This document shows, one piece after another, positions 11,601-56,306 of a stretch of DNA of 64,000 nucleotides. Position numbers and translations under genes: made by a program. This DNA comes from Octopus sinensis (lineage: Eukaryota), in the NCBI RefSeq assembly GCF_006345805.1, contig NC_043000.1, forward strand, positions 78,926,001 through 78,990,000. Reading direction: 5' to 3'. Every line of letters begins with the position of its first letter. Position 1 is the stretch's first letter. The notes under the pieces were generated by a model, which saw only the letters and a program-made list of their open reading frames with translations, searched no databases and was not told the DNA's origin.

Positions 11601-11625
11601 ACTATTTACAGCTACATATAACTAT

Positions 11626-11878: not shown

Positions 11879-11879
11879 T

Positions 11880-17816: not shown

Positions 17817-18734
17817 ATAATAATAATAATAATAATAATAATATCGAAAAATACCTTAGGAATGAGAACTCAATATATATTTATATATTGTAAATAAATG
17901 AATATGCATGGCTTAGTATTTAAAGTTATTGACCTATTGTCTCTTTGAGTACAGCCAATTATGGCTCTGGTCTGCTCTACTGCAACAAGTCCCAACCAAG
18001 TGGCCGGCGCAACTCTCTTTCTAGATGTTATATCCAGAATGCTTTGCAGGGTCAGAGCAGGGAAGGTGGAAGTCATTTTGTATATGATCGCCCACAATAG
18101 TTGGCTATCATGCGCATCCATGCCTTCCTGTGCCACACTCAACTTAGCTTGTTATTTACGCACACTTTTTGATACCAGCTGGTGTAGATATCAATTATCT
18201 TCTCTCTCCGTCTTCCCTAGATTCTATGACTGTTCAGTTCTTCAAGGCCCAGTTGGTGGCCAAGATCAAAGCGTTCGAATGTTTTCCCGGGACTTACTGA
18301 AGAACGCATGCGCCACTTTTCAAAGCTTCTTGAAGCCGTAGTGGAAGTTGATGACAGCTACTTTGAGTAAACTATTATATCACAGCCCTAATCTAGTTGA
18401 TAGATTTATATTTTTTAAATGTTTTATGTTTGGATGGGATATTGTTTTCGTTTCCTATTGCACAAACTCTCAAATGTAACCTGAACACACTGTGCGTGTG
18501 TTGTGTGTGTGTGTGTGTGTGTGTCTGAGTGAGTGTGTCTGTGTGTGCATATCTGTGTGTGTGCGTCTGTGTAATAAAAACACAATTAGGCTGAAGTTCA
18601 CTACAGCGGTTTCAAACATGTTTTTGTTGAGGAACAAATCAACATCATACAGAAATGAACGTTTTATTGAGGTTAATTAATATTAAATTCCAAAATTTAT
18701 CATTTAGGATATTTTACACAAAATGTATAGAATG

Positions 18735-18802
<68 letters not shown>

Positions 18803-18810
18803 CATATATG

Positions 18811-18983
<173 letters not shown>

Positions 18984-19176
18984 AATAAAAAAATTGCCTG
19001 CCAACAACTTGGTTCCAGGTTCAATCCCACTGTGCGATTGCAACCTGGGCAAGTGTCTTTTTTTCTAGCTCCGGGTCGAGAAATTCTTATCAGGGTATTT
19101 GGTAGACAGAAACTAAAATCGACCATTCGTTTACGTAGGTATGTCCGTATGTATATGTTATGTATGTATGTATATA

Positions 19177-19217
<41 letters not shown>

Positions 19218-19219
<2 letters not shown>

Positions 19220-20168
19220 ACTAATGTAGGATAAAATTTTTTCGAAAAATTTTATCAATGGCCAGCATATCAAAAAATAACTTAAAGGTTAAATTTATTA
19301 ATAACTTCTAAAATAAGGGCAAAAGTAAAGTTCTAATGCCAAATATGCCGAAAAAAAGACAAAATTGTCAATAACCATTGTAATTTATGCGTCTCGAAAC
19401 AAGCCGATAGAAATTTCTAAAAAATCCGTTATTACCTTATTGGTCCCAATTTTGGGGTTAATTCATAAGAATTTTCCCCTCCTCAGCGATAAATGCGTTA
19501 GACATAAATCAAATACTTACTCATACCCATGGAAAAAGCAAGCAGTAAGTCCTGAGCAGACCTAAGTACCCCAAATATATCCAAAATAGAGAATCTTCGG
19601 CACATGTCGAGAAACGTGTGATTCGAACTAGAAACTTTCACAGAGTGAGAGAATCCGGAAGTGAACACTTAAATTTACAACTAATATAGGATAAAATTTT
19701 TTCTAAAAAAAATTTTTATCAATGGCCAGCATATCAAAAAATACCTTTAAAGGTTAAATTGATAAATTACTTATAAAATAAGGGCAAAAGATAAATTGTA
19801 ATGCCAAATATGCCGAAAAAAAGACAAAATTGTCAATGACCATTGTAATTTATGCGTCTCGAAACAAGCCGATAGAAATTTCTAAAAAGGCCGTTATTAC
19901 CATATTTGTCCCAATACAATTCTCTCACTCTGTGAAAGTTTCTAGTTCGAATCACACGTTTCTCGAGATGTGCCGAAGATTTTCTATTTTGGATACATTT
20001 GGGGTACTTAGGTCTGCTCAGGACTTACTGCTTGCTTTTTCCATGGGTATGAGTAAGTATTTCATTTATGTCTAACGTATTTATCGCTGAGGAGGGGAAC
20101 ATTCTTATGAATTAACCCCGAAATTCGGACCAATACGGTAATAACTGATATTTTAGAAATTTGTATCT
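19218..20168. repeat. Direct-plus-inverted local duplication (a-b-a'-b inverted)
   Basis: 19218-19440 is repeated at 19678-19912, and 19405-19651 is the reverse complement of 19919-20168. Confidence 0.85.
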
Positions 20169-23574: not shown

Positions 23575-24714
23575 TTTCTAGTTAATTTTTTTAATTTTCA
23601 GATCATTAAAACGGAATATCAAGCTAAGAAAAACGAGTATTTTCGATACCTCATTATTTTTGCTATTAATCAAGGTTCTAAGGCCGCAAAAGCTGCTCTC
23701 GACATTTGTGCTGTGTATGGAGAGGGTGCCATAGCTCAAAGAACCGCTCGTGATTGGCATGCCAAATTCAAAAATGGAAATTTTGACCTGAAAGATGTAC
23801 CTCGTTCTGGCCGTACAGTTGAGTTCAATGAAGAGCGATTTAACCAACTCGTCAAACGACAAGGGAACTGGCAGAGAAAATGGAATGTTCCCACACGGCT
23901 TTAGAGAAGCATCTTCACTCGATGGGAAAATTTCAGAAGTATGGAGCATGGGTTCCGCATGCTTTAATTGACCACAACAAAAATCAACGAGCCACATTCT
24001 CCGCTGGTTTGCTTGATCGTCACCGCTCAACTCATGGACAGAAACAACGATTTCTTTACCGAATCGTTACTGGCGACGGAAAATGGTGCCCGTATATCCA
24101 TATGAAGCAGCGTAAGGAATGGCTTAGCTCCGGTAAACAAGCGACACCGCGCGTGAAACAAGATCTTCATCCGCGTAAGATGATGTTGTGCGTATGGTGG
24201 GACTGGGAAGGGAGTATCCATTACGGATTGTTTGAACGGAACCAAACAGTCAATGTGGAACTCTATGTTCAGTTGATGGAACAACTCAACATGGCTATTC
24301 AAGAGAAAAGACCTAATCAGCAGCATGGAATTCTATTGTTGTACGACAAAGCCCGCCCTCATATCGCCAATATGACCAAGGAAGCCATTCGAACGCATGC
24401 CTGGGAGGTGTTGCCACACCCGCCGTACTCTCCTGATTGGCACAACGTTTTTTCCACCTCTTTCGATCTCTTTCAAATGCTATGCGCGGAGATTCGTTCA
24501 ATGCTGATGCAGAACTGAGAGCTTCGTTGGATAAATTCTTCGAGTCGAAATCGGATGATTTCTACCAACGAGGTATTAAAAATCTTGTTGAGCGATGAGA
24601 AGAAGCTATAAACAACAAGGTTGGATACATTATTAATTAATTAGTTGATATTTGATTAAACCTTAAAAAAAATTAAAATTTCAAACACGGCTGAACTTAT
24701 TTGCCAACCCAATA
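23575..24714 (+). mobile_element. Decayed mariner (Tc1/mariner) transposon
   Basis: HTH segment (GAIAQRTARDWHAKFKNGNFDLKDVPRSGR), WVPHAL, TGDGKW, LLYDKARPH, HPPYSPD. Right TIR ...ttatttgccaacccaa is followed by TA. The left TIR is lost to a (CA)n run, and the ORF is frameshifted. Confidence 0.9.
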
Positions 24715-27700
24715 TATGTGTGTGTGTGCGTATGTGTGTGTATCCATACAAACGTATCTACACGCTCACGGATATGCCCCATACATATGTATATAACTAA
24801 AGTCACATATTCATGCTGACACCCCCATACACGTATACCTATATATGCATATGCACTTAAGTACACACGCTTATGTATACAGTCACTGGGATATGTAACA
24901 CATTGCCTAAATACCAGTCTTGAGAAAGTTAGGCTTCCCGAAACCAGAAAGGAGAAAGCTAATTCGAAGTCTACTGTCCCAATCCATCACTAGAACTTCT
25001 AAAATCTGCAAAAATTTCCAGAAGTTTATCATTTAAATATATATGAGCATGTCTAGATATGCAAATATATGCTTGAGAATATATACATAAGACAAAACAT
25101 ACAAATCTGCAAATATATATATACGTACATACATACATACATACATACATACATACATACATACATACATACATACATACATACATACATGCATACATGC
25201 ATACATACATACATACATACATACATACATACATACATACATTCATACGTACATACATTCCATGAAGGAGCCTTGGATCTAGGTTAGAAACCGGATCTTT
25301 CTCCATTGGCAAGAGTTCTGAGCAATAACATACATATATACATACATACTTACATACATATGAACATGCATACATACATACAAAGAACCTGATGCATTAG
25401 TTACTGCCACTGAGAGGATTACAAAGGACTGGCAAACAATTTTCACACTCATTGACCAACAAAACACTTAAAATTTTATGGATAACCTGAAGAGTTCACA
25501 TGATCTAACAGCACTTGGACATCTTCCTGGTGGGGCCAGAGTATAGAGGTGTCATCAACATATCGAAGCCATAGTGTTGGTTTTAGTAGTGTCGATCCTA
25601 AAGCCAAATTCTCAAAGTATATATTGGCTTTTATCGGTGATAATGGCGGACACATAGCTAAGCCCCTTTCATAATGTTTCTGAACAAACATTACAAAGGA
25701 TTAAAAACAGGTTGGTTAAATTTTTCGAAATATGGGCTTCATTATTATTTTCGATGATAACATCACTAAAGCCAACATTTTAGATATCACCTTAAACTTA
25801 TGTAATTTTTCTTCTTCCTCATATCATAAACCATCAACAAAGTTAAAATACGTTAGCTCCTTCAGTTACCATTGAAGGGCTATAACAAGAAATATTTCAC
25901 TTACACTTTCAAGATTGCTAATGTTGATATCTTCAACGATAAAGCCATATTTTATAGCTTTGCCTTACTTAAAATAATAAATAATGCGCCCTTTTAAGGC
26001 CTAGCCAAGCTCTTGGGCCCGGTTTCCCGGTTTCTATGGCGTATGTGTGACTCAGCTGGACGTGACGCCAGTCCATCTCAGTTTTACTCATTTTTGCCAG
26101 CTGAGTGGACTGGAGCAACCTGAAATGAAGTGTTTTGCTCAAGAACACAACGCGTCTCCCGGTCTAGGAATCGAAATCACAGTCATGATGCTGACACCCT
26201 AACCACTTAGCCACGCGCATCCACATAGTTATATGTAGCTGTAAATAGTTATATGTAGCGAAAAATGAAATGTAAGATGATAGTTACAGTTCGAATTTTA
26301 TAGGTCGTCAGAATTTACTTATAGGAACTAAAGGTATGTTTTGCCAAAGTTTACAACGATAAACGTGTTTACAAGTGTATTCTCCGAAAAAATGACTAGA
26401 AACTGTTCTTCGTTACAGAGCGGGCAGAAAGATTTACTTTGTCATATGGGAAGGATCTAGATAGAATATTTCATTCCAGATCGAATTGTTCGTTATATTC
26501 CTTTAGAGACCAAATTAAAGTCCTATACTCAGTATTGTTGCGTTTATTGATATGTCTAAATGTATATTAAGGGTTATTTATTCTTTTCGACAACTGAGAC
26601 GATTGACTACCTATGTAAAAATAAGACTTCAGAACTGGAAGTAATTTTTCATTCATAAACAGAGATTCTAGTCTTAGAATTACTGCTAAAGAAACGAATA
26701 CGATTCGAATTTCTATCAGAAATATTAATATTACTGTTATTGTTCAAAGTATTGTTCAAAGTATTATCGTTAATAATATCAATGTTATTATTTTCATTAG
26801 GAGGATTTGAGTTTAACAACTTTTGTTATGTGAAGTGATGATTTGTGAAAGGTTTTTTGTGTTTAAAAACCCTATCCTGATTCGGTTTGAATTAATAATG
26901 GAATGGTAGCTTGGATATTTTGGAAAATTGTTATCTATAGGTTTACGAAAATGGTAAGAGCGGTTGGATTTGATCTGATTACTATATGGAATTATCAACC
27001 AAACAGTTTTACTAGGATAGACCTTGTTACTAGGGTAATTATCTTGTGAAGTCCTCGACTTATTTGTATTACGTGTAGTGGGATATAAAGAACAGTTAAC
27101 TAACTTACACTGCAAAATTTCATCTTTCGATTTAGTGTTGACTTCCGAACTAAAATTTATATTGTTATTACCGATATGACGTGTTTTCATGTCCTGATGA
27201 GTAGCGAAAGAATTTATGTCAGTAGCGTTAATATCGGAAATTTTATTCTTTATAGCCTGCTTTAAGTAACGAAGAGCTATGAAGTATGGCTTTATCGTTG
27301 AAGATATCAACATCAGCAGATAATCTAGAACGCCTAATGAAGTGTTTCATAATTATAGTTTTATAATTATACATTTCCCAGCGACTCTACTGATGAACCA
27401 CGGAATAAGTGAATTGATTGACTAATTAATTGTTTTGTTTGATCATTAATTCAGAAACACATAGGTATTGGGGTAACTGAGATTTTTATTCATTTACATA
27501 ACCTGCTCGACTACACGCAACGTACCTTAAATAAGAATCTTTCTTTTCGTGGTTTCGCTTTTGATTGCACTTTTCAGCATATTAGAAGTCGAATTGGTGG
27601 TATTTTCTCCGTGTATAAATTTCTATACTCTATTATATAGAAAAATATACGTCCTCTGACTTTTAATAAGCATTCTGACCAATTGTAAAAATTTTATTTT

Positions 27701-30332: not shown

Positions 30333-30508
30333 GGAGTGGCTGTGTTGTAAGCAGCTGCTTTAACAACCACATAGTTCCGGGTTCAGTCCCACTGCGTAGC
30401 ATCTTGGACAAGTGTCTCCTACTATAGCCTCCGGCCAATTGAAACCATGTGAGTGGATTTGGTAGACGGAAACTGAAATAAGCCCGTCATATATATGTAT
30501 ATAATATA

Positions 30509-30574
<66 letters not shown>

Positions 30575-30785
30575 TGTGTCTGTGTTTGTCCACGCAACAT
30601 CGCTTGACAACCGATACTAGTGAGTTTACGGCCCCGTAACTTAGCAGTTCAGCAAAAAAGACCGATAGAATAAGTACTAGGCTTACAAAGAATAAGTCCT
30701 CGGGTGGATTTGCTCGGCTAAAAGGCGGTGCTCCAGCATGGCTACAGTCAAATGACTGAAACAAGTAAAACAGTAAAAGAGTAAT
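30333..30785 (+). mobile_element. tRNA-derived SINE (family 1) with internal microsatellite; arm C counterpart at 56049-56472 (-)
   Basis: Head ggagtggctgtgttgtaagcagc...gggttcagtcccactgcg and tail ggcggtgctccagcatggctacagtcaaatgactgaaacaagtaaaa. Confidence 0.85.
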
Positions 30786-31051: not shown

Positions 31052-31066
31052 TCAGTAACGTCGCCT
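31052..31066 (-). CDS. Copy B terminal micro-exon (RRRY-stop)
   Basis: Reverse complement reads tttattcttttcag|AGGCGACGTTACTGA. Confidence 0.75.
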   Translation of the reverse strand, partial: RRRY

Positions 31067-31717
31067 CTGAAAAGAATAAAATTACAAGAAATCAATATAT
31101 TTATTAGATTGGACATACAAATTAAAAACAATAACATAGACTAAGTATCAAGTTGGATTTATATTTCAAAATGTGTATATTAGATTAGTTGTATATATCA
31201 CATTCTTTTACAACAAAGTATGAATATTTCACCAGGCGCAGAAAAGCTTAACTCACGAACTATATTCTGAAACGTGAGATAATATATAGTAAAATTTACA
31301 ATTCTTTATCGCAATGCTACTTACAATGATGATCCAATGTGAAAGCTAGTCTGTTGATTTCACAAGAGTAGCAATAAAGTTAGTTGAAACATTGAAAGTT
31401 AATAATTTTCATATAGATAATGAAATATATGCAGATATACAAAATCTCGTGTTTACAGTGAAGAGAACATTGGCTTTCTTCAAGATAATGGTAGGGTCAA
31501 TGACATTGAACTACTTCAAATAAAGACAGAAATCGAATCGCTGATACAATTTTGTTTGTACGACAATGTAGTAGAGTGTAGTACAGTGAGAGCATTGCAA
31601 TGTTTATGCTAAACATTATTCAATTCTTTCTTGTTTTCTCTGTTTAAAATGACTAACTATATAAGGATGAGACACGTTATATTAGGGAGATCAAAACTAA
31701 TAGAAAACTTTACTCAC

Positions 31718-33534
31718 CTCTTTATAACAATCGTATTTGGTACACTTGACATTTCCATTTGAACAACGACAAACATTGCATCTATCTTGAGTCATAAATG
31801 TTTTTCCATCTGGGATAGTTTTCCCATAATATTGGCATGTAGTTGGGGGACAGTACATTTTAGTACAGGATACTTGACCAAACTGTCCGCATGTACAGGT
31901 GTTGCAGTCATCTTTAAATGTTTCGCCAGCAGAATAGGTTTTTCCTTTGTGTATACAGGGTTTCGTGCATGTTTTCTGCTCACAAACCACCCTTCCCTCA
32001 GAAGTGCACTGACATTTGTTGCAATCATTATACCATATAGAACCAATGTCGTAATGCTTGCCGTTGTAATTGCAGGTACATAGATTAGTAGTACAGCCTA
32101 CAGTACCATCGGCTTTGCATGTGCACGTGTTACAATCCTTTCTAAATGAATCCCCTATTCCATAGGTGTTTCCATTGTATAAGCAATTACAAGGGTTATT
32201 AGTACAGCTGACTCTACCGTTCACTTCACACGTACATGTATTACAACCTTGTCTAAATGTTTGACCTACATTATAAAGCTGGTTGTTGTAAGTACATTTG
32301 CAAACGTTGGTTGTACATTGAACATATCCAGTTGATAAACATTGGCATTGGTTACAATCTTCTTGAAAGGTCTGACCAATTTTATAAGACCGTCCTTTCC
32401 GTGTACATCGACACGTTTTATATGTGCACTCTACTTGTCCGTTATGCTGACATGTACAAGTGTTACAGTCATCAGTGAATGCCTGTCCGATATTATAAAC
32501 TTTATGATTGTAAGTACAGGTACATGGATTTGTAGTGCAGTCTACGGTACCATCGGCTTGGCATGTGCACGTATTACATCCCTTTCTAAATGTTTGACCT
32601 ATATTATAAAACTGGTTGTTATAACTACATTTGCACATTCTATATGTGCACGCAACTTGACCGTTATGTTGGCATGTACAAGTATTACAGTCATCAGTGA
32701 ATTTCTGTCCCATATTATAAACCCTGTGTTTGTATGTACAGGTACATGGATTTGTAGTGCAGTCTACACTACCATCAATTTTACACGTGCATGTATTGCA
32801 GCCGTTTGGAAATGTTTCTCCAATTCGGTAGGTATTTCCGTTATAAATGCATTTGCATCGCTTGTTAGAACACTGGACTGTACCACTAAACAAACATTGA
32901 CATTCATCACATTCACCAAATCTTTGGCCAATATTATAGGTCCGTCCTTGGTAAGTACATTGACAGACTCTTGTTGTACAATCTACTTGTCCGTTTATAC
33001 AACGGCAAGTGTTGCAAGCGTCAATGAAAGTTTGACCCTCTTGATATTGTGAATTTTTGTAATAACAGCCACATCTATCACTGTTACACTGCACTGTTCC
33101 TGTAGTTTGACAGGTGCAAGTCTTACAACCATCATTGAAACTCACTCCAACGTTGTAGTCTTTACCATTATACTGGCACTGACACACGTTATTAGTACAC
33201 TGAATATAGCCAGAAGAAAGACATTTACATCTATTACATTTGTCTTGGAATTCTTCACCCTCTTGGTATACCTTTCCGTTGTAAGTACATTGTTTAGGGC
33301 AGTCTTTGTTGCTACATTGTACCTGACCACCGTGTTTGCATTCACATGTATTACAGGATTGCTGGAATGTCTCTCCTACTCTGTAACGTCTACCTTGATA
33401 GATACAAGTAGATTCCTGCCCGTAATCACAACGTAAATTTGTACAGACTGCTTTGCCATATTCACCACATACACACGTGTTGCAGTCGATCTTGAATCTT
33501 CCTCCATACTTCCTTCCATTATGTGTACATTCGT
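31718..33534 (-). CDS. Copy B exon 2: 1817 nt, 16 six-Cys VWC-subdomain/pacifastin-like repeats (96 Cys)
   Basis: Acceptor ttttcctttacag|AC (phase 1) and donor GAG|gtgagt. The frame is uninterrupted (track ORF 31697-33577 minus its intronic ends). Confidence 0.93.
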
Positions 33535-33655
33535 CTGTAAAGGAAAACATCAACTGATAATTATTTCCATTAACCACAGAAGAGTTATCTACTGAAAATG
33601 AATATGTATATCCTAAAGTAATTCCTCACATACATACAGACATACAGACCTATAG

Positions 33656-33711
<56 letters not shown>

Positions 33712-33942
33712 ACATACACACACATATATACACATGAATAAATACATACATACAACATATGTATATACATGGACGTAATTGAATATGAAGGTACAGGTAT
33801 ATAAACATATATACATATATATATATGTATATACACGCATTTATACATACATACATATACACAAACACACACACACAGACACACACACAAATATATATAT
33901 ATATATATATACATACACACATGATTAAATACATACATACAT

Positions 33943-33984
<42 letters not shown>

Positions 33985-34006
33985 ATGGATGTACTTGAAT
34001 ATGCAG

Positions 34007-34055
<49 letters not shown>

Positions 34056-34107
34056 TTATACGTACATACATACAGTACATACAAACACACACACACAGAC
34101 ACGTACA

Positions 34108-34202
<95 letters not shown>

Positions 34203-34650
34203 AAGGGAATTTGAAAATGCAGAGGTCTTTAAGCTGTTTATTGACCGGTTTCACTTTCTTTTAAAAAAGCTGATCAAAAGGCTTTGTATAACCTTTGTGG
34301 TGTTAAAATTTAGTTAACATACATGTATTAAAATACAGTGATAGAGTCTTTGACAATGGTAAGAAAATGTTAAGAAATAGAATATTTGACGAAGATAGGA
34401 GCATGTCAAGAGAGGCTTTCTGTTTAAACAGATTAGGTAAAAGTGTTTAAAATAGGCAAAATAGTTCATAAGAATCATAATCATAATCAATATCTATAAA
34501 TCTGAAATGTGAAAAGTCTGTTTGTCTGGTTTTGGCATTGGAACGGGTTAAAGGGCACTAGATCCCGTCGGATTGACTCCAAAATTTACAGGGACATGTA
34601 AAATGAGGTGAGGATTTGAGTGGTTTAGGTTAGAAACCCCTATATAATGC

Positions 34651-34714
<64 letters not shown>

Positions 34715-34844
34715 ATGTGTGCATTATGTGGTCGGTTGTGCTGAACATATGCACACCTATGATAAAAGTGCTGGCGAGTTTGCATGACAACTCTAATGAA
34801 AGGCGTGACCTCTAGGACAAAATTCCTCATCTTATAAAATGTGG

Positions 34845-35830
34845 CCATGGTAAACCCGAATGAAATCGGGTTATATTAACCAAAATGTGAAAAGAGGTCT
34901 AAATGGGGCTTGAAGGGGATTAAAATTTACAGGAGCGGGTGTTTAAGAATTCTCTGTTACATCAAGCTAAAAAATTTGCGCCATCCTTTCAATCGTCAAT
35001 GTGATGCCGTCCATGATGAAGAAGATTTGAATGCTTGCCATGGTGAGTCAACTGTCATGAGAAAGAATCACTTCAAAGTTTGGTGTTTAGGAATTTTCTT
35101 TTACATCAAGTTCAAAATTTTACGCCAGCCGTTAAACTGCCACTACGTTGCTGTCCGTCGTTAAGAAATGCCAGCCATGGCGACTCTACTATCCTCAGAT
35201 TCTATCCCTTCAAACTTTGGTTTCCAATATTTTTTTTTATTCAGCTCGTAAGTTCGTCTGTCCCTTTTAAATGTTAGTGTTTTGCTGTCTGCCTTGAAGC
35301 AGACCGTTCCGTTGTTACTGCCTGATATTTATGATTGATCTTTCAAAATATTTTTCTTTCTCAACTTACTCAAGATCTTTTGTCGTTTATAAATGGGAGA
35401 GAGATAGATAGAGAAAGATAGAGAGTAAGAGAAAGCTAGGGAGAGTCCGAGAGAAAGGAAGAGTAAGAGAGTGGGAAAGTGAGAGAATAAGAAGCGAGAA
35501 ACATAGAGGGAGAATGCGGTGATAAAAACAGAAAGGAAGCAACAGAAAGTAAGAACCTCACTCTTACCCGCGCGTCGAGCGGGTCACCTTTGCGAAAAGT
35601 TTGTTTGTTTTGTTTTGGTTTCTCTCGGACTCTCCCAAGCTTCCTCTTACTCTCTATCTTTCTCTATCTACCTCTCTCGCATGTTTAAACAACAAAAGAT
35701 CTTGAGTAAGCTGAGAAAGAAAAATATTTTGAAAGATCAATCATAAATATCAGGCAGTAACAACCAAACAAAGGAAGCAACAGAAAGTAACAACCACACT
35801 CTTACCCGCACGTAGAGCGGGTCACCTTAA
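34845..35830. mobile_element. Helentron/HINE-like non-autonomous element with internal inverted repeat
   Basis: 5' hairpin aacccgaatgaaatcgggtt and duplicated 3' hairpin acccgc..gcgggt (~35570, ~35805). Inverted arms at 35311-35456 and 35619-35764. Confidence 0.45.
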
Positions 35831-35927
35831 GATAGTTGTTTATTTCATAAGAATCATAACTTTTTATAAGTTCAAAGAAATCGTAGCATATATACAGAAA
35901 GATTTTGTAGACAGTATTTGATAGTAG

Positions 35928-36185
35928 GTGGAAACGCGTGGCTTAGTGGTTAGGGTGTCAGCATCATGATCGTAAGATTGTGGTTTCGATTGCTGGACCG
36001 GGCGACGCGTTGTGTTCTTGAGCAAAACACTTCATTTCACGTTGCGTCCAGTCAACAGAGCTGGCAAAAATGAAGATCGCTGTGATCGACTGGCGTCCCG
36101 TCCAGCTGGGTAACACATACGCCATAGAAACCGGGAAACCGGGTCCATGAGCCTTGCTAGGCTTTAAATGGGCGCATTTATATTA
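35928..36185 (+). mobile_element. tRNA-derived SINE (family 2)
   Basis: Homologous to 11626-11878. Confidence 0.8.
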
Positions 36186-37172
36186 TTTGATAGGAGAAAG
36201 CGTGTATTGCTTTGTCAAATGTTCATTAGAAATGATAATTATTTATAAGGACTTTAGAGGAATGATCACAATATGCCCATTCCCCAGTAAAAACACACAG
36301 ACACACAAAGAAGAAGCACACACATATACACACGCAATACAATTCCAACAATCACAACAAAAAATCACAGGTACACACATACACAAATACACCAGCACGT
36401 AGACGCACACACAGCACAGAAAAATAACACATGTACATAGACACACACATGCACACACACCCGAAAAATACATGAAACACATACACACACACACACACAA
36501 ACGCATACCCAGTATAACTACGCACAGTATGTACACGCATACACAACACACACACGTACACACCATCCTTATAAACGTAGCACACAAGGACACACACGCA
36601 ATTATATTATTATCATTATTATTAATATTATTATTATTATTAAACAGCAAAACGTCAGAAAAATATCAGAAACTATCTGCTACTCATATGTTTCATGTAC
36701 ACGTTCGTCGCATAGTTTACTTTGAGAATTTGAGAATATTAGATTCTCAGTCTAAACCGTCAGACGAGCGAGAACGTGAAACTCTGAATAGCAGGTTTTT
36801 CTGCTGATTTTGCAGCTTTAATAGTACTAAAGCATATTACTCTACCTCCGGTTTGCCAGTGCTATATTTTAAATATTAAATGACTATTCTCTATTAATAT
36901 TTACTTTTCAATATTTAATTTGCTCAATCAGACAATCAATACTTCATTTCATTTCTTTCTTACTATATATTCTATATCCTATATTAATATTAAAAGAATA
37001 TAAATAAACATAGACAGAGTTGGAATTCCTTTGAGTAATCTATTCTTCTATACACAATCATACAAACCCCTTTGTATATATACGTATGAATAAATGGTTG
37101 ATAAATTAAACTAAATAATTAAGAAGGAAAACGTCGCGAAATAGACAATGTACGGCAATATAATTTACTTAC

Positions 37173-37224
37173 AGCTGTTCACACATGAAATAGCTACTAT
37201 TACTAGTAACAATTTGTACAACAT
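37173..37224 (-). CDS. Copy B exon 1: signal peptide MLYKLLLVIVAISCVNS
   Basis: accatcATG context, hydrophobic core, and donor T|GTAAGT in phase 1, matching the phase-1 acceptor at 33534. Homologous to 43118-43169. Confidence 0.8.
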
Positions 37225-37321
37225 GATGGTCAGTTGGTTTCTCTTTCCTCAGCGTCTTGGAGATCGGTGATGGTTGTCTTGTGACACAAGGGCAAGTTTG
37301 AGAAACGTCTTAATAGAGCTC

Positions 37322-37329
37322 TTTATATA
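37322..37329 (-). promoter_or_regulatory. TATA box of copy B
   Basis: TATATAAA ~100 nt upstream of the ATG, inside a ~250-bp block conserved with the copy C promoter. Confidence 0.65.
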
Positions 37330-39640
37330 GTTCTAAGTAAACGTGATCAATTATTTAAACTGAATTAATTCAGTTGGCTTAATTATTTACATTAATTCTA
37401 TATTTACAATCACAAATTTTCCCTGCAAAATGAAATATTCAAAAATGGGTGGATCTTTTTTCCTTGACATTATGTTAATTAGTTAAATGTTTTAATGATT
37501 GTTTCATTAATGAATACATTAACGTCACATGTTACTTAATGTGCTCATAGATATTAAAGCAGATATGAAATAATTGTTGCAGTATACGTTACACACCTCA
37601 ATACCGAAATGCAAATGTTCATGTATTCATTCAATCCTTAAGAATAGTTTTTGCAACTTTTTCTGAACATACAATGCCTGCACCCAACCCAAAGAAAATA
37701 ATTTAGCTTCGATTCTCGTGTCTTTTCACATGTTAGTCAAAGACGCATTTTCCAGTTTAAGGAATTTTGTCTCCCTTTTACATTTTTCTAACAGGCCACT
37801 TTTATACCAACTTTAATTGTGCCTAACTGGTTATACACATATTTGTGTATGGCTGAGGTCCACCATACAGAAATATATCTCCATACAATACAACATAGTT
37901 CACAAATATTTCTCCATACAACATTGTTCACATTCATACCGGTTATTTGTGTATGGCTGAGCTCGGCCATACACAAATAGCCAGCATGGATGTGAACTAC
38001 GTTGTATTGAGATATATCAAATATTCTAATAGAGAGATAAACGAAACCTAATTAATAATAAATTAATGATAAATAGGATCTTAGAGTATCATATGTTCAT
38101 AGGATTACCCGTACCTTTAAATACTTTAGATGCGGGTAATAAGTATATCATACTATGATTTGGTAGCACAAGTTATTCGGGGTGTCATATCATTCATAGC
38201 ATACCCTCTATTATCTCGAAATCTATGAAGTATTGCTTTCTAATAACTCTTAACCCCTTTGATCTGTAATCTTTTAATAATTATATTATATATTTACACC
38301 TTCAGTATTGGAATTCTCTTCGCTCGTGGTTAGTATACCATATAAATTTACAATGGATTACTAAATCTTGCACCTCACTTAAATATGAGATATAACCCCA
38401 AGGATCTGTTATTATTTTGCATAGATCAGTGTATTCGATGTATTTTAGAAATATTTTTGTAACCCATTTCCAAAGGTATCTTTATTTTTTAATTATATAT
38501 TTGATACTTATATTTTTATTTTATATGGTATTCATGATAATAACATATCTAAGAGTTTTTTCAATATATCAATATAACTTATATCTTAATTTATAAAATA
38601 ATCGTTATTTTATTTTATTTTGACTTATCCTTACTTTTATGTGTGTTATACCTTTTATATCATTCTGTAAAGAAATATCTTATAAAACTGTTTTTAAAAT
38701 GTTTATTTTTCATATTTTATATTAAATTTATGTATTCATAAACCTTCCTATACATTTGTCTAGCTTCTATATCTTATAAAGTGTTTATAACTTCTTTTCA
38801 TAAAACTCACTGTACAAGACAATTTTATATTTTAGATTTATAATTACACATTGTTTTATAAATTTTTTCTATCTATTTTTGATATTTTTATACATTTGTA
38901 TATCCTTTCATAAACTTTCCTAGCGTTTGTAATTCATAAATAATTCTTTTATAAGGTCGTTTTATATAATTTACTGGATATGGGAATCCTTATTTTAATA
39001 TATTTTTTAATCACTCTATATTCATTAAATGTTTACATGCCCAAGTAACGCTTTTATACATTTAGTATACCTCTAATTCAATTACCTCTTATATTCGATA
39101 CATTATTTTACATTATCTTATACTTATCCACCAGCAATGAAGAGAATAGTTCTTTTTATTGCTTTAAAATATACTATGTACTTCTACCCATATGATAATA
39201 TAATTCCGTTATACATTCATGTTAGAATGTCTTTATCATGACCTTCTCAGCAATATGCTTAGAAAATTTCTAATTTTTGTTGTATATTAAGGTTTTAAGT
39301 TTAATTTTTTTCCTTATTCTATATTTGATTTAATTTTCTCAAATTAATATTATAGGTTTGCTAAGTTATAAATTACTATCTCCCGTATCCTTCAATTCTC
39401 TAATCTAAATAATCTAAATAAGTATTGCCCACACTTGTCCTTCTTCCTTCCTTCCAATTACCATCCCTTCCCAATCAGACATTCTCTTACTCCCAACCTT
39501 GCATCCTACACTTTTATGTAGATATGGCTAGATATATGGTTCCAGTACATTGGAAGTCTAGTAAATTAACTCACTCTGCCACAAATATAACAAAAGGAAA
39601 CAATGTAAATATTTTAGTTTCCATTATTGATATAAATTTG

Positions 39641-42870: not shown

Positions 42871-43012
42871 TTATTGAATCAATCTATAAAATGGCAAGGA
42901 AAAAGGATCCACCTATTTCTGAATAGTTTATTTTGCTGTGAAAATTTGCGAATTTAAAATACTTAAGCCAAATGAGTTTCAATTTAAACAATTGATCACG
43001 TTTACTTCGAGC

Positions 43013-43019
43013 TATATAG
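43013..43019 (+). promoter_or_regulatory. TATA-like box of copy C (variant TATATAG)
   Basis: Aligns with the copy B TATATAAA: ctatatagggagctc versus ctatataaagagctc. Confidence 0.5.
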
Positions 43020-43117
43020 GGAGCTCTTCTAAGACGTTTTTCAAACTTGTCCTTGTTTCACAAGACAGCCATCACCAATCTCCAAGAGGCAAAGAAAAGA
43101 AAATCCATCTGACCATC

Positions 43118-43169
43118 ATGCTGTACAAATTGTTACTAGTGATAGTAGCTATTTCATGTGCAAACAGCT
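43118..43169 (+). CDS. Exon 1 (assigned to copy C): signal peptide MLYKLLLVIVAISCANS
   Basis: accatcATG...AGC T|GTAAGT, with 4 of 52 nt differing from copy B exon 1. The link to exon 2 at 53312 crosses an assembly gap. Confidence 0.75.
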
Positions 43170-44038
43170 GTAAGTAAATTATATTGCTGTACATTGTCTA
43201 TTTCGCGTCGTTTTTCTACTTAGTTATTAACTTTAGTTTATCAACAATTGATTCTTACAGTTCACCTCTACCTAAATCTCTCACGCGTGCCTGAGTGTAT
43301 ATTTAATGCGTGCATATTTGTGCCTGCGTTTCCCTCTCTGCCTCTTTCTTTACACAAATACACACATATTTATCGTTTACTTGTTTCATTCATTTTATTG
43401 CAACCATGGTCGGATACTACCTTGAGTTTCGTCAAATAAATTGACTACAATTTATTCCATCAGTCTCTTTTACGGTATCGCGAAGTCACGGGAACGTAAA
43501 AGAGCTCGGCACTGGTTGTCAAACGGTGAGGGGACAATCACAAACACTAACACTAATACACACAGGTATACACTTATATACATATTATGACGGGCTTCCA
43601 CACAGTTTCCCTCTACCAGTTTCACTCACAAAGCAATAATTGGTCCGCGTAGTATATACTTGCCTAAAGTGCCTCTGTGTGATAAATCACACAGCCACAA
43701 CAGCGCCTATAAAAGCGTAATAGTGTATAAGGAGGGAAGGAAAGGAACAGACAGACGGCGTTTGCAGGTCGTTAAGCAACTTCCTCATTCAGGTTAAGAA
43801 GAGCTTTTGGAAAAACAAATAGGGACAGATATGCTCACACAAACGCACACCAAGCACACAGCTGCGCAGATTACACTTCTTATGACATTTTCACTACAGT
43901 TTAGCGTGGAATAAAAAAAATCTCGCTTACGGTAAGGGGTATAAAGACATCATTAGCGGCTCTATAGACCAAAAGATCAGCATTTCTGGCTCTTTTTCGG
44001 AACCGCTGATGAAGCTGTTAACTAGCATTTACTGCTGT

Positions 44039-46848: not shown

Positions 46849-49599
46849 AAAACTTTAATGTACCTCAATAACTGCTACATCTTTCATCCGATTTCATTAA
46901 AATTTCATACACAGCTGCTTCATATCCTTGACCCGAACATAGGCTACTTTATTTTTTAAAAATTGATATTGGGGCCTCTAGAGCGATGGGAAATCAACAA
47001 TAGATGATTCCTATTCATTTGCGTTAATCAGCTTTTTTAATCTTTTTATAACAGTGAAAGGATTTTTCTATTGATTTCCACTGTCCACCAGCGACGGTGG
47101 TTAAATCGACTAGGAACAGTGAACACATACGTTTCCATAATTCTCAACCGATTTTCACCAAACTTTACACACACGTTACTTATATCCCAAGGATGGTTAT
47201 ACACTAAACATTTTACCAGAGCTGCCGCATAGATGGACCTAACTTGACATAGCGTTTTTGTATGTAGGATCTTCCATACTTTTTAAAACTTTTTTATAAA
47301 AGTGAAAGGATTTTGTCTACTTATATATTTCGACTGTTCACCTACCACGGTGATTAGATTGACGGTGATATTAGATCGTAATATAATATCACCTACCACG
47401 GTGATTAGATTGACTAGGAACACTCTACGCGATGAATATCCAGTACCAAACAATTTTAATCTCCATAGTTAAACTGCATTAAACTTTGGCAAACTTACCT
47501 TTACCTTTTCTGAGTTACTTGAAAAGTGATGCTCCCTTCCCTTTCTCTTATTTGTTCATGCTTTTGTTTACATACTAATGCGTTGTTTCACTTTAAGGAT
47601 GCTTATTTACCCATTCATTATATTTCGACTGTCGTCCATTGTTTCCAATACGTTTTAGTATTGTTGCTCTAGCCTTTTTTTTTTAAAAGAATAACGTATG
47701 ATTCGTCCCAAAGAATCAAACTTTAAATGAGTTTTGCTTCCACAATCGAAAGCTATACATATCTTTCAGAAAGCTCTATACCAATTCAACTTTATGCAGT
47801 ATTCGCTGTTAGTTCATGCGCAGGCTATGTGGGAAGACAGAATAAAGGGGCTTTTATTAGCTTATCTCTCCGAAAAAAATAGATCCCTTTGCTGTTGAAA
47901 GCAATAAACTCGCAGAGGGGAAGTTTCAACGTTTTCCTTCAATTTCATTACACCATTTATGTGGCTGTTTCTGACAAGAAATTTCACTTTCATGTAAAAT
48001 AACTATATTTTGTAGTCAATATCCGTAATCTACTTCCAAAACACTTCAGTAGCTCTACTTTGCATTGCTTGCAAACTTATATGTTCTATGATCATTAAAG
48101 TGCAACAACCACCCTTCAGTTTGATTTTCCGTTCCTAGGTTAATCGGAATCGTAGATTGTCGTGCGATTCAACAGCCTTCTTGGTAGCTCAATTATTTGG
48201 TGAAAAAATACCACCTAAGCAACTTAAGCCGACCAAACGATGGGTGTGTTTGCTAGTATTTATTGTTGTTCAATCTTAAAACTATATATAAACCTTGTTT
48301 TATATTTATATTGTATTGATTTTAGTCCTTGCATTGCAGCCGTGTTTTGGCACCACATTGAAGGGTGAATCGACCCCAGTATTTTTTAAGTCTAGTACTT
48401 TATTCTATCAGGTTCTCATGCCAAGCGACTAAGTTACGGGGACGTAAGCAAAACAATATGTGTGTGTGTGCGTGTATGTATGTATGTATGTATGTATGTA
48501 TGTATACTACATATTATGTATGTATCTTTGTGTCTGTGTTTGTCTCCACCACCGCTGGTCAAGAGGTCTTACTTTGTTTACGTCCCCGTAACTTAGTGGT
48601 TTGGCAGACTCGGCAATGAAACCCCAGTCTCGCGCCATTTCCGCTCTACTGGTCATTCACTACAACACCTGTCTGTGTGGACTGTCTTTGCACAGAAGCC
48701 ATCCGGATCCCCGCCTTCGCCGTGAACAGGAATTAATCTCTTTGCTCCTTTGCGTCATATGGGCTCAACCCCCTCCTCTCTTCGTCTGACTCCCCTCTCT
48801 CTCCTCTCTTCATCTGACACCTACTTCCTCTCTTCATTCCTACCCACTTTCTCACTTCATTGATACCTTCTTTCAAACACTTTTTCTATTCAGTTGCCAT
48901 GCTTGACCGCTAAATCCACAAGTTTTTAAACTTCCATACTCAGTACGTCATTACTTTGCCTTTCTCTCTCCTTTTCTTAATTGTTTCTTTCTTTTTTCCT
49001 TTTCCACAATGCCCGATTACAAATTCTTCCTCCTGAACCTTCACCGCCGACTAAAGAAACACCTTCTATTGCTTTCAAACTTCTATTAATCTTTCCCATC
49101 TGATTTTCAAAAAAACACGCTTCTGTAGTCATGTTTACTTTCTCAGTCACCTCCCTCACCCCTACCTCATCCCCAAAGGTTTCCGCCTCCATTTCCACCC
49201 CACTTTCCACTCTGCTTCTGCCATCCTACCCATACTCTGTTCTACTTCTTACCGCCTTATCAGTGCCACCATTCGTTCTAATCTCTTTAAAATACACACC
49301 CCAGACCACCTTCTCCTTCTCGCTTATTCCACCTTTTCCTCCCGTCTTTCACCTTCTGTTGCACATTCCACTCTACGCTTCATACGCCATGTAAATCATG
49401 TTTTGTCCACGAGTTCCTCGCTCGCACTAAACAACATAAACTCCACTCACTCCATTTTCCCCAGCCGACGCCACTACACCCACGCTTTCCTCATCCTCAT
49501 CCCCCATACTCATCCCCACCCTTCCATTACTCTAATCCCCAAGCACTTACTTTCCCTCTCTCTCCTCCCAGCTTTCTACTGCCACGCCACCCCTTCCAC

Positions 49600-51050
49600 A
49601 TCTAACTCATCCACCCACTCCCGACTTCAGTCTGTTGTTACCATTCCTCCTAATCTTCCCCTCTCTGAAACGGAGCGCTCTCTTCTCAGTAAGGATCTGC
49701 ATTTCATCTCCCTCACTTTATCCAGTAACGAATTTTAGACCCGTGCTGGTATCCATAGCTTTGTGCGTCGCATCAGGCTATATGCACTATTCCACAACAC
49801 TTCACCTGCATCTAATGAAGAGGACTGCTTCACTGACCTGGGCCGCCGACCATCCTACTGGACGCCAGCTCCTTGCCAGTTCCAAGCAGTAGAACATTTT
49901 ACATGCATCTGCCAACGTGTGTGGACCAGTTTAACTTTCGCAGCAATCCCCAACATTTTAACATCTCCCCGGACGAACTCTCGACATTCCGATGTCTTCG
50001 AAGCTGCAAAGACATCATCACAAAGGCGGCCGACAAGGGTGGAGCCGTGGTGGTGTAGCGCGCAGACCTCTACAAGGCTGAAGCTCTACGCCAACTTCAA
50101 GGCACCTCATTTTATTGCCCTCTGCCCTCCAACCCCAAGCCTAACTACCAAGAGACTGTGTCCACCACTATCTATGACCTCACTTCCTCCTCCCATCTCC
50201 CTTTCACCACCTCCAACCTTATTATCTACACTCCACGCACCCCACCATTTACTTCCTTCCCCAAATCCACAAGCCCAACAACCCTGGCTGCCCCATCGCC
50301 TCCGCCTCTAACTGCTCCACGGAATTTATTTCTAAATACTTCGATCGTGTCCTTGCCTCCTAGTGGCTTCCCTCCCCTCCCACATCCATTACACTAAACT
50401 GTTTCCGTCTCTTTAACTCTTTCTCCTTCCCTTCTGGCCCTTCTAAACTTCTCTTCATTATTGATATCAAGGGTTTATATACGGTGATCCCATACAACGA
50501 AGGACTTCTTGCACTTAAACACTTTCTGGACCTTCGACCCAACCCCGAACCTTCGTCTGGCCGAACTTGTTCTCCCCCTCAACTGCTTCTCGTTCGCGGG
50601 TGATTTTTACCAACAGATCTCTCGGAAGTGGCTATAGCAACGAGAATGTGCCCCAACTACATGAACTTGTTCATTGGCTACGTTTCACTGGTCCCACTCA
50701 CGAACTATACGGTCGCTATATCGATGACTCTGTCGGTGCGACCTCACTCTCCCGCGAAAAACTAGACTCCTTCGTCTCTTTTGTCTAATCCTTCCAGCCT
50801 GCCATCGAATTCTCCTCAATTATTTCCAACACTTCCGTCGAATTTCTCGACATTTCGGTTAGAATATACCACTCCTCTCTCACTGTCTCCATCCACTACA
50901 AACACACTGACTCATGTTCATACCTCAACTTTTCCTCCTTCCACCCTACTAACATCAAGCTCTCCATTCCCTACTCTCAATTCCTCCGTCTGTGCAGGCT
51001 CTGCAGTAACAACCATGACTTTTCGTCCTTCGTGAATATCTCCTCACCAC
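49600..51050 (+). mobile_element. Decayed C-rich PLE reverse transcriptase
   Basis: LSETERSLLSKDL.F, KAADKGGAVVV, PKIHKPNNPGCPI, DIKGLYTVIP, YGRYIDD, YKHTDSCSYLNFSSFHP, IPYSQFLRL, spread across frameshifted frames. Confidence 0.85.
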
Positions 51051-51409
51051 TATCCACATAGCCCTTGCCAAGGCATGCTCCGTGGACCGTACCTCTGCTC
51101 TCTCCCCCACACCTGCCCCGCCGTTGCTCATCTCCCGTTTCCACCCACCCCACCCCCACCCCACCCTCTAACGCTCCGAGACTTCCGGTGACTCCTATCC
51201 GTCCCCTCCACTTTGCACATCTTCCCAACCTACCCCTTCCCTCCTTCAAAGAGCCCACAACAGCGTGACCTCCTGGTCTACAGTTTCTTCCCTAACCCCA
51301 CCTCCCAGCCTGGATCATAGCCCTGCTCTTGCCCACGCTACCGTGCTTGCCCCTACATCTCCAACACCAATATTTTCTTTTCTTTATTTTATGAATATTC
51401 TTATATATA

Positions 51410-51944
51410 TCTCTTATTATAAAAGGCAGATTTTATCTGCCTCCCTTTGTAACTTATAGAAATCTACAATATAGGATTTCTTCAATTAAAATTTACCTAG
51501 CATTTTTAAGAATAGAATGCATCGGGTCATGCCAGGTCCAGTTTTTCAAATTTAAACTCCAATTAAGCAAAATTTACAGAAAACTCACATTCTGGTGTGT
51601 ATGTCAAATGTTTTTCTTAATGTGGTTTACACCACACGCACACGCAGACACACAGTGTGCAACGAATAAAATGAAAGTAAATAGCGACAGAGTGATTTGA
51701 GGAAGACTAAACTGAAAGTATTTAAACCACTACTCAAAAAATAAAAAAACACAGCAAACAGAAACAAATAAATACATAACGATTTACTCCTCACACAATT
51801 TCTTCAATTAGATTTTTCAAAGTACTCCATTCGGTCATGCCATAATATATTTCTTTCAATTTCACCCCCAATTAAGACAAAATTCGAGAAAACTCAATAT
51901 TTTAACATTTCACTCCGAAAGCATTGATGTACATGTGTGCGTGC

Positions 51945-51985
<41 letters not shown>

Positions 51986-55114: not shown

Positions 55115-55758
55115 GTGAGTAAAGTTTTCTATTAGTTTTGATCTCCCAATATAACGTGTCTCATCCTTATATAGTTAGTCATTGTAAACAGAGAAAACAA
55201 CAAAGAATGGAATAATGTTTAGCATAAACATTGCAATGCTCTCACTGTACTACACTCTACTACATTGTCGTACAAACAAAATTGTATCAGCGATTCGATT
55301 TCTGTCTTTCTTTGAAGTAGTTCAATCATTGACCCTACCATTATCTTGAAGGAAGCCAATGTTCTCTTCATTGTAAACACAAGATTTGTATATCTGCATA
55401 TATTCATTATCTATATGAAAATTATTAACTTTCAAGTTCAACTAACTTTATTGCTACTCTTGTGAAATCAACAGACTAGCTTTCGCATTGAATCATCATT
55501 GTAAGTAGCATTGCGATAAAGAATTGTAAATTTTACTATATATTATCTCACGTTTCAGAATATTGTTCGTGAGTTAAGCTTTTCTGCGCCTGGTGAAATA
55601 TTCATACTTTGTTGTAAAAGAATGTGATATATACATCTAATCTAATATACGCATTTTGAAATATAAATCCAACTTGATACTTAGTCTATGTTATTGTTTT
55701 TAATTTCTATGTCCAATCTAAAAAATATATTGATTTCTTGTAATTTTATTCTTTTCAG

Positions 55759-55773
55759 AGGCGACGTTACTGA
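55759..55773 (+). CDS. Copy C terminal micro-exon (RRRY-stop)
   Basis: cttttcag|AGGCGACGTTACTGA. Confidence 0.7.
   Translation, partial: RRRY

Positions 55774-56260: not shown

Positions 56261-56306
<46 letters not shown>

Follow-up and report, generated by a model that had tools for sequence, protein, structure and literature searches.

A predicted gene of Octopus sinensis for a chain of sixteen six-cysteine modules with pacifastin and VWC/E-module features

Introduction

What can be expected of a protein in which sixteen cysteine-rich modules follow one another almost without linkers, each resembling both a protease inhibitor and a building block of extracellular proteins? This question is raised by gene B, located on the minus strand of a 64,000-nucleotide (nt) stretch of Octopus sinensis DNA (NCBI RefSeq assembly GCF_006345805.1, contig NC_043000.1, positions 78,926,001 to 78,990,000). 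The whole stretch is referred to as the window, and all coordinates are positions within it. Gene B extends from its TATA box to its AATAAA signal over 37329-30981 (-). An initial annotation had described this gene and two further copies, here called A and C. The observation is confirmed as real, and the gene model of B holds. Gene B is an unannotated, apparently functional addition to a mollusc family with members detected in the saliva and ink of octopus as well as in egg-case and shell matrices. Our preferred, still tentative explanation is that its product is a matrix- or secretion-type scaffold in which a few modules may act as live inhibitor heads.

Results and discussion

Gene model of copy B

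Gene B is predicted from its sequence to be an intact, TATA-driven gene of two or three exons. By direct reading of the sequence, the TATA box (TATATAAA, 37329-37322) lies ~100 nt 5' of the ATG at 37224, which has an A at position -3. The coding part of exon 1 (37224-37173, 52 nt, ATG...AGC T, donor gtaagt) encodes the signal peptide MLYKLLLVIVAISCVNS and the first base of a Tyr codon. The hydrophobic core of this signal peptide has a mean Kyte-Doolittle value of 3.3. Intron 1 (33535-37172, 3.6 kb, phase 1) contains (TA)n/(CA)n microsatellites throughout, as well as short interspersed repeats. Following the acceptor ttttcctttacag, exon 2 (33534-31718, 1817 nt, i.e., 605 codons plus 2 nt) carries all 16 six-Cys modules and ends at the donor gag|gtgagt. 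The phases of exons 1 and 2 are compatible, as T and AC together form the Tyr codon. Exon 2 is spanned by a minus-strand open frame of 626 codons (33577-31697). Such a length in DNA of 34% GC, together with a Pfam match of E = 2e-80, places this frame far beyond chance. Exon 1 is independently supported by a paralogous exon 1 at 43013-43169, where the signal peptide, the donor and a TATA-like box are conserved. Without exon 1, the product would have no signal peptide; with it, the proposed secretion of the protein is well founded in the sequence.

The 3' end of the gene is less certain. Predicted intron 2 (31067-31717, gtgagt ... ttattcttttcag) would be followed directly after ttattcttttcag by the coding part of exon 3 (31066-31052, AGG CGA CGT TAC TGA), which encodes RRRY and the stop codon. 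An AATAAA polyadenylation signal is located at 30986-30981, ~65 nt 3' of this predicted stop. The spliced coding sequence (CDS) would comprise 1884 nt and encode 627 amino acids (aa). The sequence of predicted exon 3 is the same in all three copies (equivalents at 2211-2225 (+) in copy A and 55759-55773 (+) in copy C), but the flanking non-coding DNA is equally conserved. Moreover, the 650-nt interval 3' of exon 2 contains at least one alternative acceptor, and an AATAAA just 5' of exon 3, so that an unspliced C-terminus ...KEVSKVFY is also possible. Exon 3 is favored by the relative P0001, which is collinear with gene B over the last three modules and ends with ...KTGRR opposite ...KERRR(Y). 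P0001 is probably transcript-derived, as an apparent translated 5' untranslated region precedes its signal peptide. The RRRY micro-exon is thus possible, on weak support. The exon coordinates, the length of ~627 aa, the 96 Cys residues and the 16 modules joined mostly by single residues, all proposed initially, check out.

Several repeats lie within intron 1. A pair of 146-nt inverted repeats (35311-35456/35619-35764, 94.5% identical) resembles a miniature inverted-repeat transposable element. A 260-nt element at 35925-36188, similar to a short interspersed nuclear element, recurs at 11623-11879, 25972-26227 and 62426-62682 with 84-85% identity. Dense (TA)n/(CA)n arrays occupy 33585-34260, directly 5' of the exon-2 acceptor, and similar arrays are found at 18700-19270 and 30420-30620. 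These arrays give rise to long spurious open reading frames (ORFs) rich in Cys, Val, Tyr and Ile.

Module layout of the protein

The gene B product contains 97 Cys residues, one in the signal peptide and 96 in the mature chain. The 96 residues form 16 modules with the spacing C-x16-C-x2-C-x-C-x7-C-x4-C, with small variants in modules 1, 5, 6 and 16. The linkers between modules 3 to 14 consist of exactly one residue each. The mature protein (610 aa, ~68.6 kDa, isoelectric point 8.35) is composed of 15.7% Cys, 12.5% Thr, 9.3% Asn, 9.2% Gly and 6.9% Tyr, and contains no N-x-S/T sequon. Pairwise identity among its modules ranges from 26 to 78%. The upper end of this range reflects a recently duplicated two-module unit, in which modules 7-8 correspond to modules 9-10 (7/9 are 70% and 8/10 are 78% identical). 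In the segment of modules 8-10 (32408-32743 (-)), this is seen as 222-nt and 111-nt repeat spacing.

No dibasic sites were found between modules, and the sole internal dibasic pairs lie inside disulfide-locked modules. Because there is no dibasic site between modules, the chain is expected to remain unprocessed, and the intact chain of the initial annotation is a reasonable inference.

Domain identity of the modules

Pfam profiles identified the modules as related to two families at once, in agreement with the assignment made from the sequence. Pacifastin_I (PF05375, MEROPS I19) matched the gene B protein with 264.5 bits (E = 2.2e-80) in 15 stretches, with the gathering cut-off of this family being 27.9 bits. 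VWC (PF00093) matched with 200 bits (E = 5.5e-60) in 16 stretches, the best of which covers profile positions 1-49 of 57 and extends into the beginning of the following module. FnI_RECK matched with 120 bits (E = 5.9e-35), and TILa gave a marginal match (31.8 bits at a cut-off of 27, E = 1.6e-7). SVWC gave no match in the Pfam scan up to E = 10; its pattern has eight Cys residues, whereas the modules have six. The same scan recognized no VWD, C8, TIL, CHRD or other accessory domain in the protein.

The pacifastin core, Cys2-Asn-x-Cys3-x-Cys4-x2-3-Gly-x3-6-Cys5-Thr-x3-Cys6, is present in its strict form in 12 of the 16 modules, and its Cys/Gly spacing in all 16. Asn follows Cys2 in 14 modules, and Thr follows Cys5 in 12. 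The signature of this core and the arthropod spacing of 9-12 residues between Cys1 and Cys2 were taken from PMC2689174. None of the 16 modules follows this strict 9-12 pattern: their Cys1-Cys2 spacing is 14-18 residues, and 16 residues in 13 of them.

The N-terminal part of the modules follows the VWC motif C...G-x-x-Y-x-x-G-x-x-F/W...C-x-x-C-x-C, with the CxxCxC spacing in all 16 modules. Tyr8 and Gly11 are invariant across the twelve modules of 37 columns, and position 14 is Phe or Trp. VWC domains have ten Cys residues; the modules of gene B have six each, and as no CC dipeptide occurs in the protein, the second VWC subdomain (CCxxC) is absent from every module. The resemblance to a first VWC subdomain that lacks the CCxxC half was therefore rightly recognized, as was the pacifastin core. 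Tyr content was also considered as a sign of an adhesive based on 3,4-dihydroxyphenylalanine (DOPA), the two Tyr per repeat having been put forward as an adhesion hint, and this was rejected: the two Tyr residues per module occupy conserved positions of the N-terminal hairpin that align with VWC and E modules.

When a profile of the 16 repeats was compared with sequences in PDB, it matched the N-terminal halves of the VWC domains of NELL2/NEL over its whole length (E = 4e-13). The E modules of VWF, MUC2, MUC5AC and MUC5B were also matched over the whole length, and locust pacifastins at profile positions 10-38 only. For module 15, the best PDB sequence match was SGPI-1, with the Lys of module 15 aligned with the P1 Arg of SGPI-1. 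Judged from these comparisons, each module is a six-Cys FnI-like unit that combines the hairpin of VWC subdomain 1 or an E module with a pacifastin core. An ancestral pacifastin-like class with an N-terminal beta-hairpin has been defined by Rodriguez-Aguilar et al. 2026 (PMC13388995). The modules of gene B fit this ancestral class and not the conventional arthropod class, because their Cys1-Cys2 spacing is 14-18 instead of 9-12 and their N-terminal hairpin is of the VWC/E type.

Predicted structure

The whole chain was predicted by AlphaFold2 as all-beta, mostly with five strands per module, at a mean predicted local distance difference test (pLDDT) score of 78.8. Its predicted template modelling score of 0.23 is as expected for beads on a string. 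Module 15 alone was predicted with a pLDDT of 90.6, and its model has the pacifastin-like and VWC/E-like fold suggested earlier. Foldseek superimposed this model on trypsin-bound SGPI-1 with a root mean square deviation (rmsd) of 1.0 A over 29 columns (55% identity). For protease-bound SGPI-1, SGTI, PMP-C and related structures together, rmsd values were 0.9-1.6 A over 29-32 columns at 48-55% identity, with 0.9-1.1 A for the protease-bound locust pacifastins. The E modules of VWF and mucins were matched over all 37 columns, with a query TM-score (TMq) of 0.75-0.83, and the VWC domain of CCN3 with a TMq of 0.78. The whole-chain Foldseek search was uninformative (TM-scores ≤0.11), as it matched any beta-hairpin repeat protein, in addition to NEL, mucins and VWF. 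In pacifastins, which have a three-stranded core, the disulfide pairing is 1-4, 2-6 and 3-5, and this pairing is also predicted for every module of gene B.

Reactive loops

In pacifastins, the reactive site is the residue pair after Cys5-Thr (PMC2689174, PMC13388995). The corresponding predicted P1-P1' pairs of modules 1-16 are NL, NK, NN, SD, TR, NK, TN, YR, TN, YK, TN, NN, TN, QK, KM and KY. The predicted P1 residue is Thr or Asn in five modules each, Lys or Tyr in two each, and Ser or Gln in one each, so that four of 16 are canonical. P1 residues of unassigned specificity amount to ~20% of domains family-wide (PMC2689174), compared to 75% in gene B. With no more than four canonical residues predicted at P1, a role as multi-headed inhibitor is plausible for a few modules only, and the multivalent protease inhibitor that had been proposed was overstated.

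The four canonical modules are modules 8 and 10, with predicted P1 Tyr, and the two C-terminal modules. Module 15 (31847-31960 (-)), the most pacifastin-like of all, has the Cys5-Cys6 loop T-K-M-Y, with predicted P1 Lys and P1' Met. For module 16 (31724-31840 (-)), the predicted pair is P1 Lys and P1' Tyr, and its first two Cys are further apart (x18). In the ancestral class, P1 is biased toward Lys, Glu and Thr, and K-M and K-Y, the pairs of modules 15 and 16, are enriched (PMC13388995).

Relatives and known systems

Homologues were searched for in a non-redundant collection of 5.8 billion protein clusters, derived from public genomes and metagenomes. The closest matches, P0001 and P0002, are 38-40% identical to the gene B protein. 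P0001 is a catalogue sequence with no source annotation. P0002 is located on a 3.5-kb contig of Joint Genome Institute (JGI) sample 3300019005, which we take to be a Tara Oceans metatranscriptome. Among annotated proteins, six O. bimaculoides VWFC-domain proteins are homologous to gene B with E = 5e-80 to 6e-68, and kielin/chordin-like or tenascin-X-like proteins of Octopus, Mytilus and Liolophura with E = 2e-53 to 4e-44. Other named homologues are kielin/chordin-like proteins of O. vulgaris and O. bimaculoides and kielin/chordin-like or tenascin-X-like proteins of Dreissena. Further homologues include pacifastin-type inhibitors of dipterans and a flea, and Myxococcota proteins in which the module is joined to Kunitz or Kazal. 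According to the Pfam annotation of the homologues, some relatives pair the module with Kunitz, Kazal or WAP inhibitor domains.

A number of homologues (P0030, P0031, P0040, P0054, P0058, P0063), bacterial wherever their source is named (Polyangiaceae, Myxococcota, Deltaproteobacteria), contain the module in tandem, often fused to Kunitz or Kazal. Bacterial occurrence of ancestral pacifastin-like domains has likewise been reported, and was treated cautiously (PMC13388995).

The posterior salivary gland of O. vulgaris contains a "pacifastin" protein group, whose best Swiss-Prot match is a locust inhibitor and whose best nr match is an O. bimaculoides kielin/chordin-like protein (PMC7693380). 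From these best matches it follows that the "pacifastin" of the venom literature and the "kielin/chordin-like" of NCBI are one family. By homology, gene B is a member of this molluscan multigene family, labelled VWFC-domain, kielin/chordin-like or pacifastin. The statement that no named gene has such an architecture thus does not stand: relatives in octopus, mussel and chiton are annotated as VWFC-domain or kielin/chordin-like, a "pacifastin" of this family is known from octopus salivary gland, and the domain class is described in PMC13388995. Serine proteases make up 54% of the venom protein groups of the O. vulgaris gland (PMC7693380), and octopus family members have also been detected as proteins in ink. 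The shell matrix of Lottia contains a protein described as VWC/pacifastin (PMC4094399). In the argonaut egg-case matrix, VWC-only kielin/chordin-like proteins are the most abundant, with 9-13 contigs per species (bioRxiv 10.1101/2021.07.10.451900). Like gene B, these egg-case proteins are octopod, secreted, built of VWC-type modules only and present as many paralogues, a likeness at the level of description.

The ancestral class includes 109 mollusc proteins, and Mollusca is the second largest group in the study that defined it (PMC13388995). Its mollusc members have a low predicted processing potential, and the class is tied to extracellular-matrix architectures and stable linkers (PMC13388995). 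It shares with gene B the tandem arrays, the linkers without processing sites, the K-M and K-Y pairs and the occurrence of Thr at P1. It differs in that gene B is built of nothing but 16 abutting modules, with one-residue linkers, and their P1 is mostly Asn or Thr instead of Lys or Glu. The Octopus VWFC/kielin-chordin-like proteins (O. bimaculoides A0A0L8H6G5 and paralogues) contain homologous module arrays (E = 5e-80 to 1e-47, 29-35% identity), and signal peptides are recorded for the O. vulgaris salivary protein groups, as for gene B. However, the Octopus paralogues have Thr/Pro-rich linkers of 10-20 residues, which gene B lacks, and mostly Lys or Glu at P1.

Long unprocessed chains are also known outside molluscs. 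The light chain of crayfish pacifastin has nine unprocessed domains, crustacean precursors mostly have no dibasic sites, and Trichoplax TAPP-1 has 42 domains (PMC2689174). Crayfish pacifastin and TAPP-1 thus share with gene B a signal peptide and many domains without dibasic separators, and the absence of dibasic sites, initially used to set gene B apart from arthropod precursors, does not separate them. The differences lie elsewhere: in crayfish domains, Cys1 and Cys2 are close together, as in the 9-12 signature, and the light chain has a transferrin-like heavy chain as its partner. The multi-headed inhibitors of crustaceans, moreover, span trypsin, chymotrypsin and elastase specificities. 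Long multi-domain pacifastins have also been found in assassin-bug venom (PMC6891600).

The VWC domains of NELL2, NEL and CCN3 and the E modules of VWF, MUC2, MUC5AC and MUC5B share the full 37-residue module with gene B, both in profile and in predicted structure. In contrast to these proteins, gene B lacks the second VWC subdomain, VWD, C8 and TIL, and each of its modules is a self-contained six-Cys unit. The E module of VWF and mucins, six-Cys and FnI-like as well, follows TIL inside a D assembly, a context that does not occur in gene B. Overall, gene B adds no new category; it is set apart by linkers of one residue and by heads that are mostly non-canonical.

Copies at the locus and their evolution

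Three exon-2 loci and two exon-1 loci are present in the window, and tblastn detected no further family members in it. The three copies initially described are therefore real, but they are unequal: B is complete, A is intact but cut by the window edge, and C is a pseudogene. Copy A is represented by the 3' 1561 nt of exon 2 (1-1561 (+)), with an intact frame. Over these 1561 positions, it differs from B by 20 substitutions, which give 8 synonymous and 11 non-synonymous codons, and no Cys is lost. The estimated rates are dS ~0.027 and dN ~0.0095 (dN/dS ~0.36). Three of the 11 amino-acid changes are located in reactive loops, where ~10% are expected, and these numbers are too small to carry meaning.

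The exon-2 equivalent of copy C (53312-55114 (+)) is 96% identical to B and contains 19 indel events, 18 of which are frameshifting, and one in-frame stop; two Cys are lost. Copy C is a pseudogene, barring bad assembly of 53312-55114 alone. With one copy decaying in this way, the triplication gives no evident sign of the selection for dosage that had been suggested. A second signal-peptide exon, encoding MLYKLLLVIVAISCANS and followed by a GTAAGT donor, is located at 43118-43169 (+), head-to-head with gene B, and presumably is exon 1 of copy C. MLYKLLLVIVAISCANS differs from the signal peptide of gene B by a single V to A change. A TATA-like box (TATATAGG) is located at 43013 (+), in a position equivalent to the TATA box of gene B. 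The region comprising this second promoter, 5' untranslated region, exon 1 and donor (42890-43258 (+)) is 82% identical to B (37084-37471) over ~390 nt.

Copies A and B are arranged tail to tail and copies B and C head to head, with the promoters of the latter two ~5.7 kb apart. The duplicated unit measures at least 12-13 kb (A 1-12358, B 33278-25493, C 53561-64000), and the units differ by multi-kb insertions. Between A and B, identity amounts to 98-99% in the gene region but to 90-96% in the distal flanks. That A and B arose as an artefact of haplotype assembly was rejected on the basis of these flanks and of insertions of several kb. The closer similarity of the gene region suggests gene conversion or constraint. 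B and C have a mosaic history, since their exon 1 regions are 82% and their exon 2 regions 96% identical; this would reflect either gene conversion of the body or an older duplication of the 5' end. As read from these alignments, the locus is under birth-and-death evolution with signs of gene conversion, in which A and B are intact inverted duplicates and C is decaying. The turnover of the family is thereby visible in one window, with an intact inverted pair more alike than its flanks next to a decaying head-to-head copy.

Possible roles of the gene B product

According to the explanation that we tentatively prefer, the gene B chain would stay whole and, with three disulfides per module, form a stiff beads-on-a-string rod located in an extracellular secretion or matrix, where it could bind proteins via its exposed Cys5-Cys6 loops. 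Modules 15 and 16 are predicted to be canonical, substrate-like inhibitors of trypsin-like S1 proteases, and modules 8 and 10 of chymotrypsin-like S1 proteases. The remaining twelve modules, with P1 Asn, Thr, Ser or Gln, would more probably be rigid spacers, or else heads whose specificity is weak or unassigned. This explanation is supported by the dN/dS of ~0.36 between A and B with all Cys kept, which indicates constraint, and by the precedent of crayfish pacifastin, an unprocessed nine-domain inhibitor (PMC2689174). It is also consistent with relatives that carry Kunitz, Kazal or WAP, and with the presence of family proteins in the protease-rich salivary gland of O. vulgaris. Several observations weigh against it. 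In twelve of the 16 modules, Asn, Thr, Ser or Gln is predicted at P1, whereas 75% of the domains of the family have a trypsin- or chymotrypsin-type P1 (PMC2689174). P0001 and P0002 share this non-canonical bias, and in the Octopus paralogues with linkers, Lys or Glu predominates at P1. The fold also occurs in VWC, E and FnI modules, where its roles are non-inhibitory, and no functional assay of any molluscan member was found in the literature. Finally, the 5.8 billion clusters contain no protein near-identical to gene B (best 40% identity) and hence provide no transcript evidence.

Much of this would also be accommodated by a purely structural protein, i.e., a rigid rod of 16 modules, with vestigial inhibitor loops, from which a secreted material is made or by which it is cross-linked, for instance mucus, cement, a shell-like matrix or an egg case or capsule. 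We regard this as possible but the weaker of the two accounts. In its favor are the dominance of VWC-only kielin/chordin-like proteins in the argonaut egg-case matrix (bioRxiv 10.1101/2021.07.10.451900), the VWC/pacifastin protein of the Lottia shell matrix (PMC4094399), and the stable linkers and extracellular-matrix architectures with which the ancestral class is associated (PMC13388995). The mostly non-canonical P1 residues and single-residue linkers of the gene B subfamily point in the same direction, as does the full-length structural match to E modules, whose role in VWF and mucins is one of assembly. However, nothing ties gene B itself to any material, modules 15 and 16 retain P1 Lys and a near-perfect inhibitor core, and the conserved Tyr residues, being at conserved fold positions, give no evidence of DOPA-type adhesion. 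Protease inhibitors are moreover common as matrix components, so that structural and inhibitor roles are compatible. A further proposal, which we consider rather unlikely, is that gene B, P0001 and P0002 form a distinct subfamily that has lost the linkers and most canonical P1 residues and is now a rigid, non-inhibitory rod with one or two live C-terminal heads. If true, such a protein would be an intermediate between a matrix scaffold and a soluble inhibitor, and could be a building block of a cephalopod-specific secretion.

The kielin/chordin-like label raises the question of an extracellular binder of bone morphogenetic proteins (BMPs) or transforming growth factor beta, in which the subdomain-1-like modules would sequester ligands. 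Such a role is compatible with the VWC match (5.5e-60) and with the match of the repeat profile and model to the N-terminal VWC halves of NELL2/NEL and CCN3. In the complex of crossveinless-2 VWC1 with BMP2, contacts are made by the N-terminal clip and subdomain 1, which also counts for a binder. We nevertheless consider it improbable, as the C-terminal VWC half is missing in all 16 modules (no CC dipeptide), the Pfam scan found neither CHRD nor other accessory domains, and a young, duplicating and pseudogenising cluster with a TATA promoter is unlike conserved developmental regulators. Equally hard to reconcile with the protein is the release of single-module peptides of the venom or hormone type from a precursor, as in locusts and assassin bugs. 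Insect precursors are so processed (PMC2689174, PMC6891600), and the predicted C-terminus KERRRY contains a basic run. However, the linkers of modules 3-14 are one-residue and non-dibasic, internal dibasic pairs occur only inside disulfide-locked modules, and mollusc members as a group are low in predicted processing potential (PMC13388995), which leaves this fate very improbable. We attach just as little probability to a locus that is not expressed or whose copies are all decaying relics. Copy C clearly is a pseudogene, and the public collection searched contains neither a protein nor a transcript product that is nearly identical. Against this, copy B has retained an open frame of 605 codons with all 96 Cys, together with its signal peptide, TATA box and canonical splice sites. 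In copy A, the frame is uninterrupted over the 1561 nt, at a dN/dS of ~0.36. With four canonical and twelve non-canonical heads in one chain, the gene B protein is a clean test case for inhibition by ancestral modules.

Other features of the window

Rfam gave no match in the whole window, and among the ORFs neighboring the gene copies Pfam recognized a mariner transposase only. This mariner-type remnant (23880-24518 (+), Transposase_1, 1.5e-21) is located in the spacer between A and B and is up to 80% identical to proteins scattered across unrelated animals and metagenomes. A second transposon-derived ORF, of 177 aa, matched two unnamed proteins. An AT-rich insertion (22-24% GC) at 4600-9600 occurs downstream of copy A only. 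It contains 700-nt direct repeats (5783-6500/8320-9020, 94% identical) around an ORF of 375 aa (6981-8108) with no Pfam match, and looks like a mobile element, of the long-terminal-repeat or another type. The putative 10-kb first intron of copy C includes a block at 48000-52000 with 44-46% GC, compared to a window average of ~34%, and a GC skew near -0.38. Its Pro/Ser-rich ORFs (49403-49738, 49763-50311) have no Pfam match, and the block is probably a decayed retroelement.

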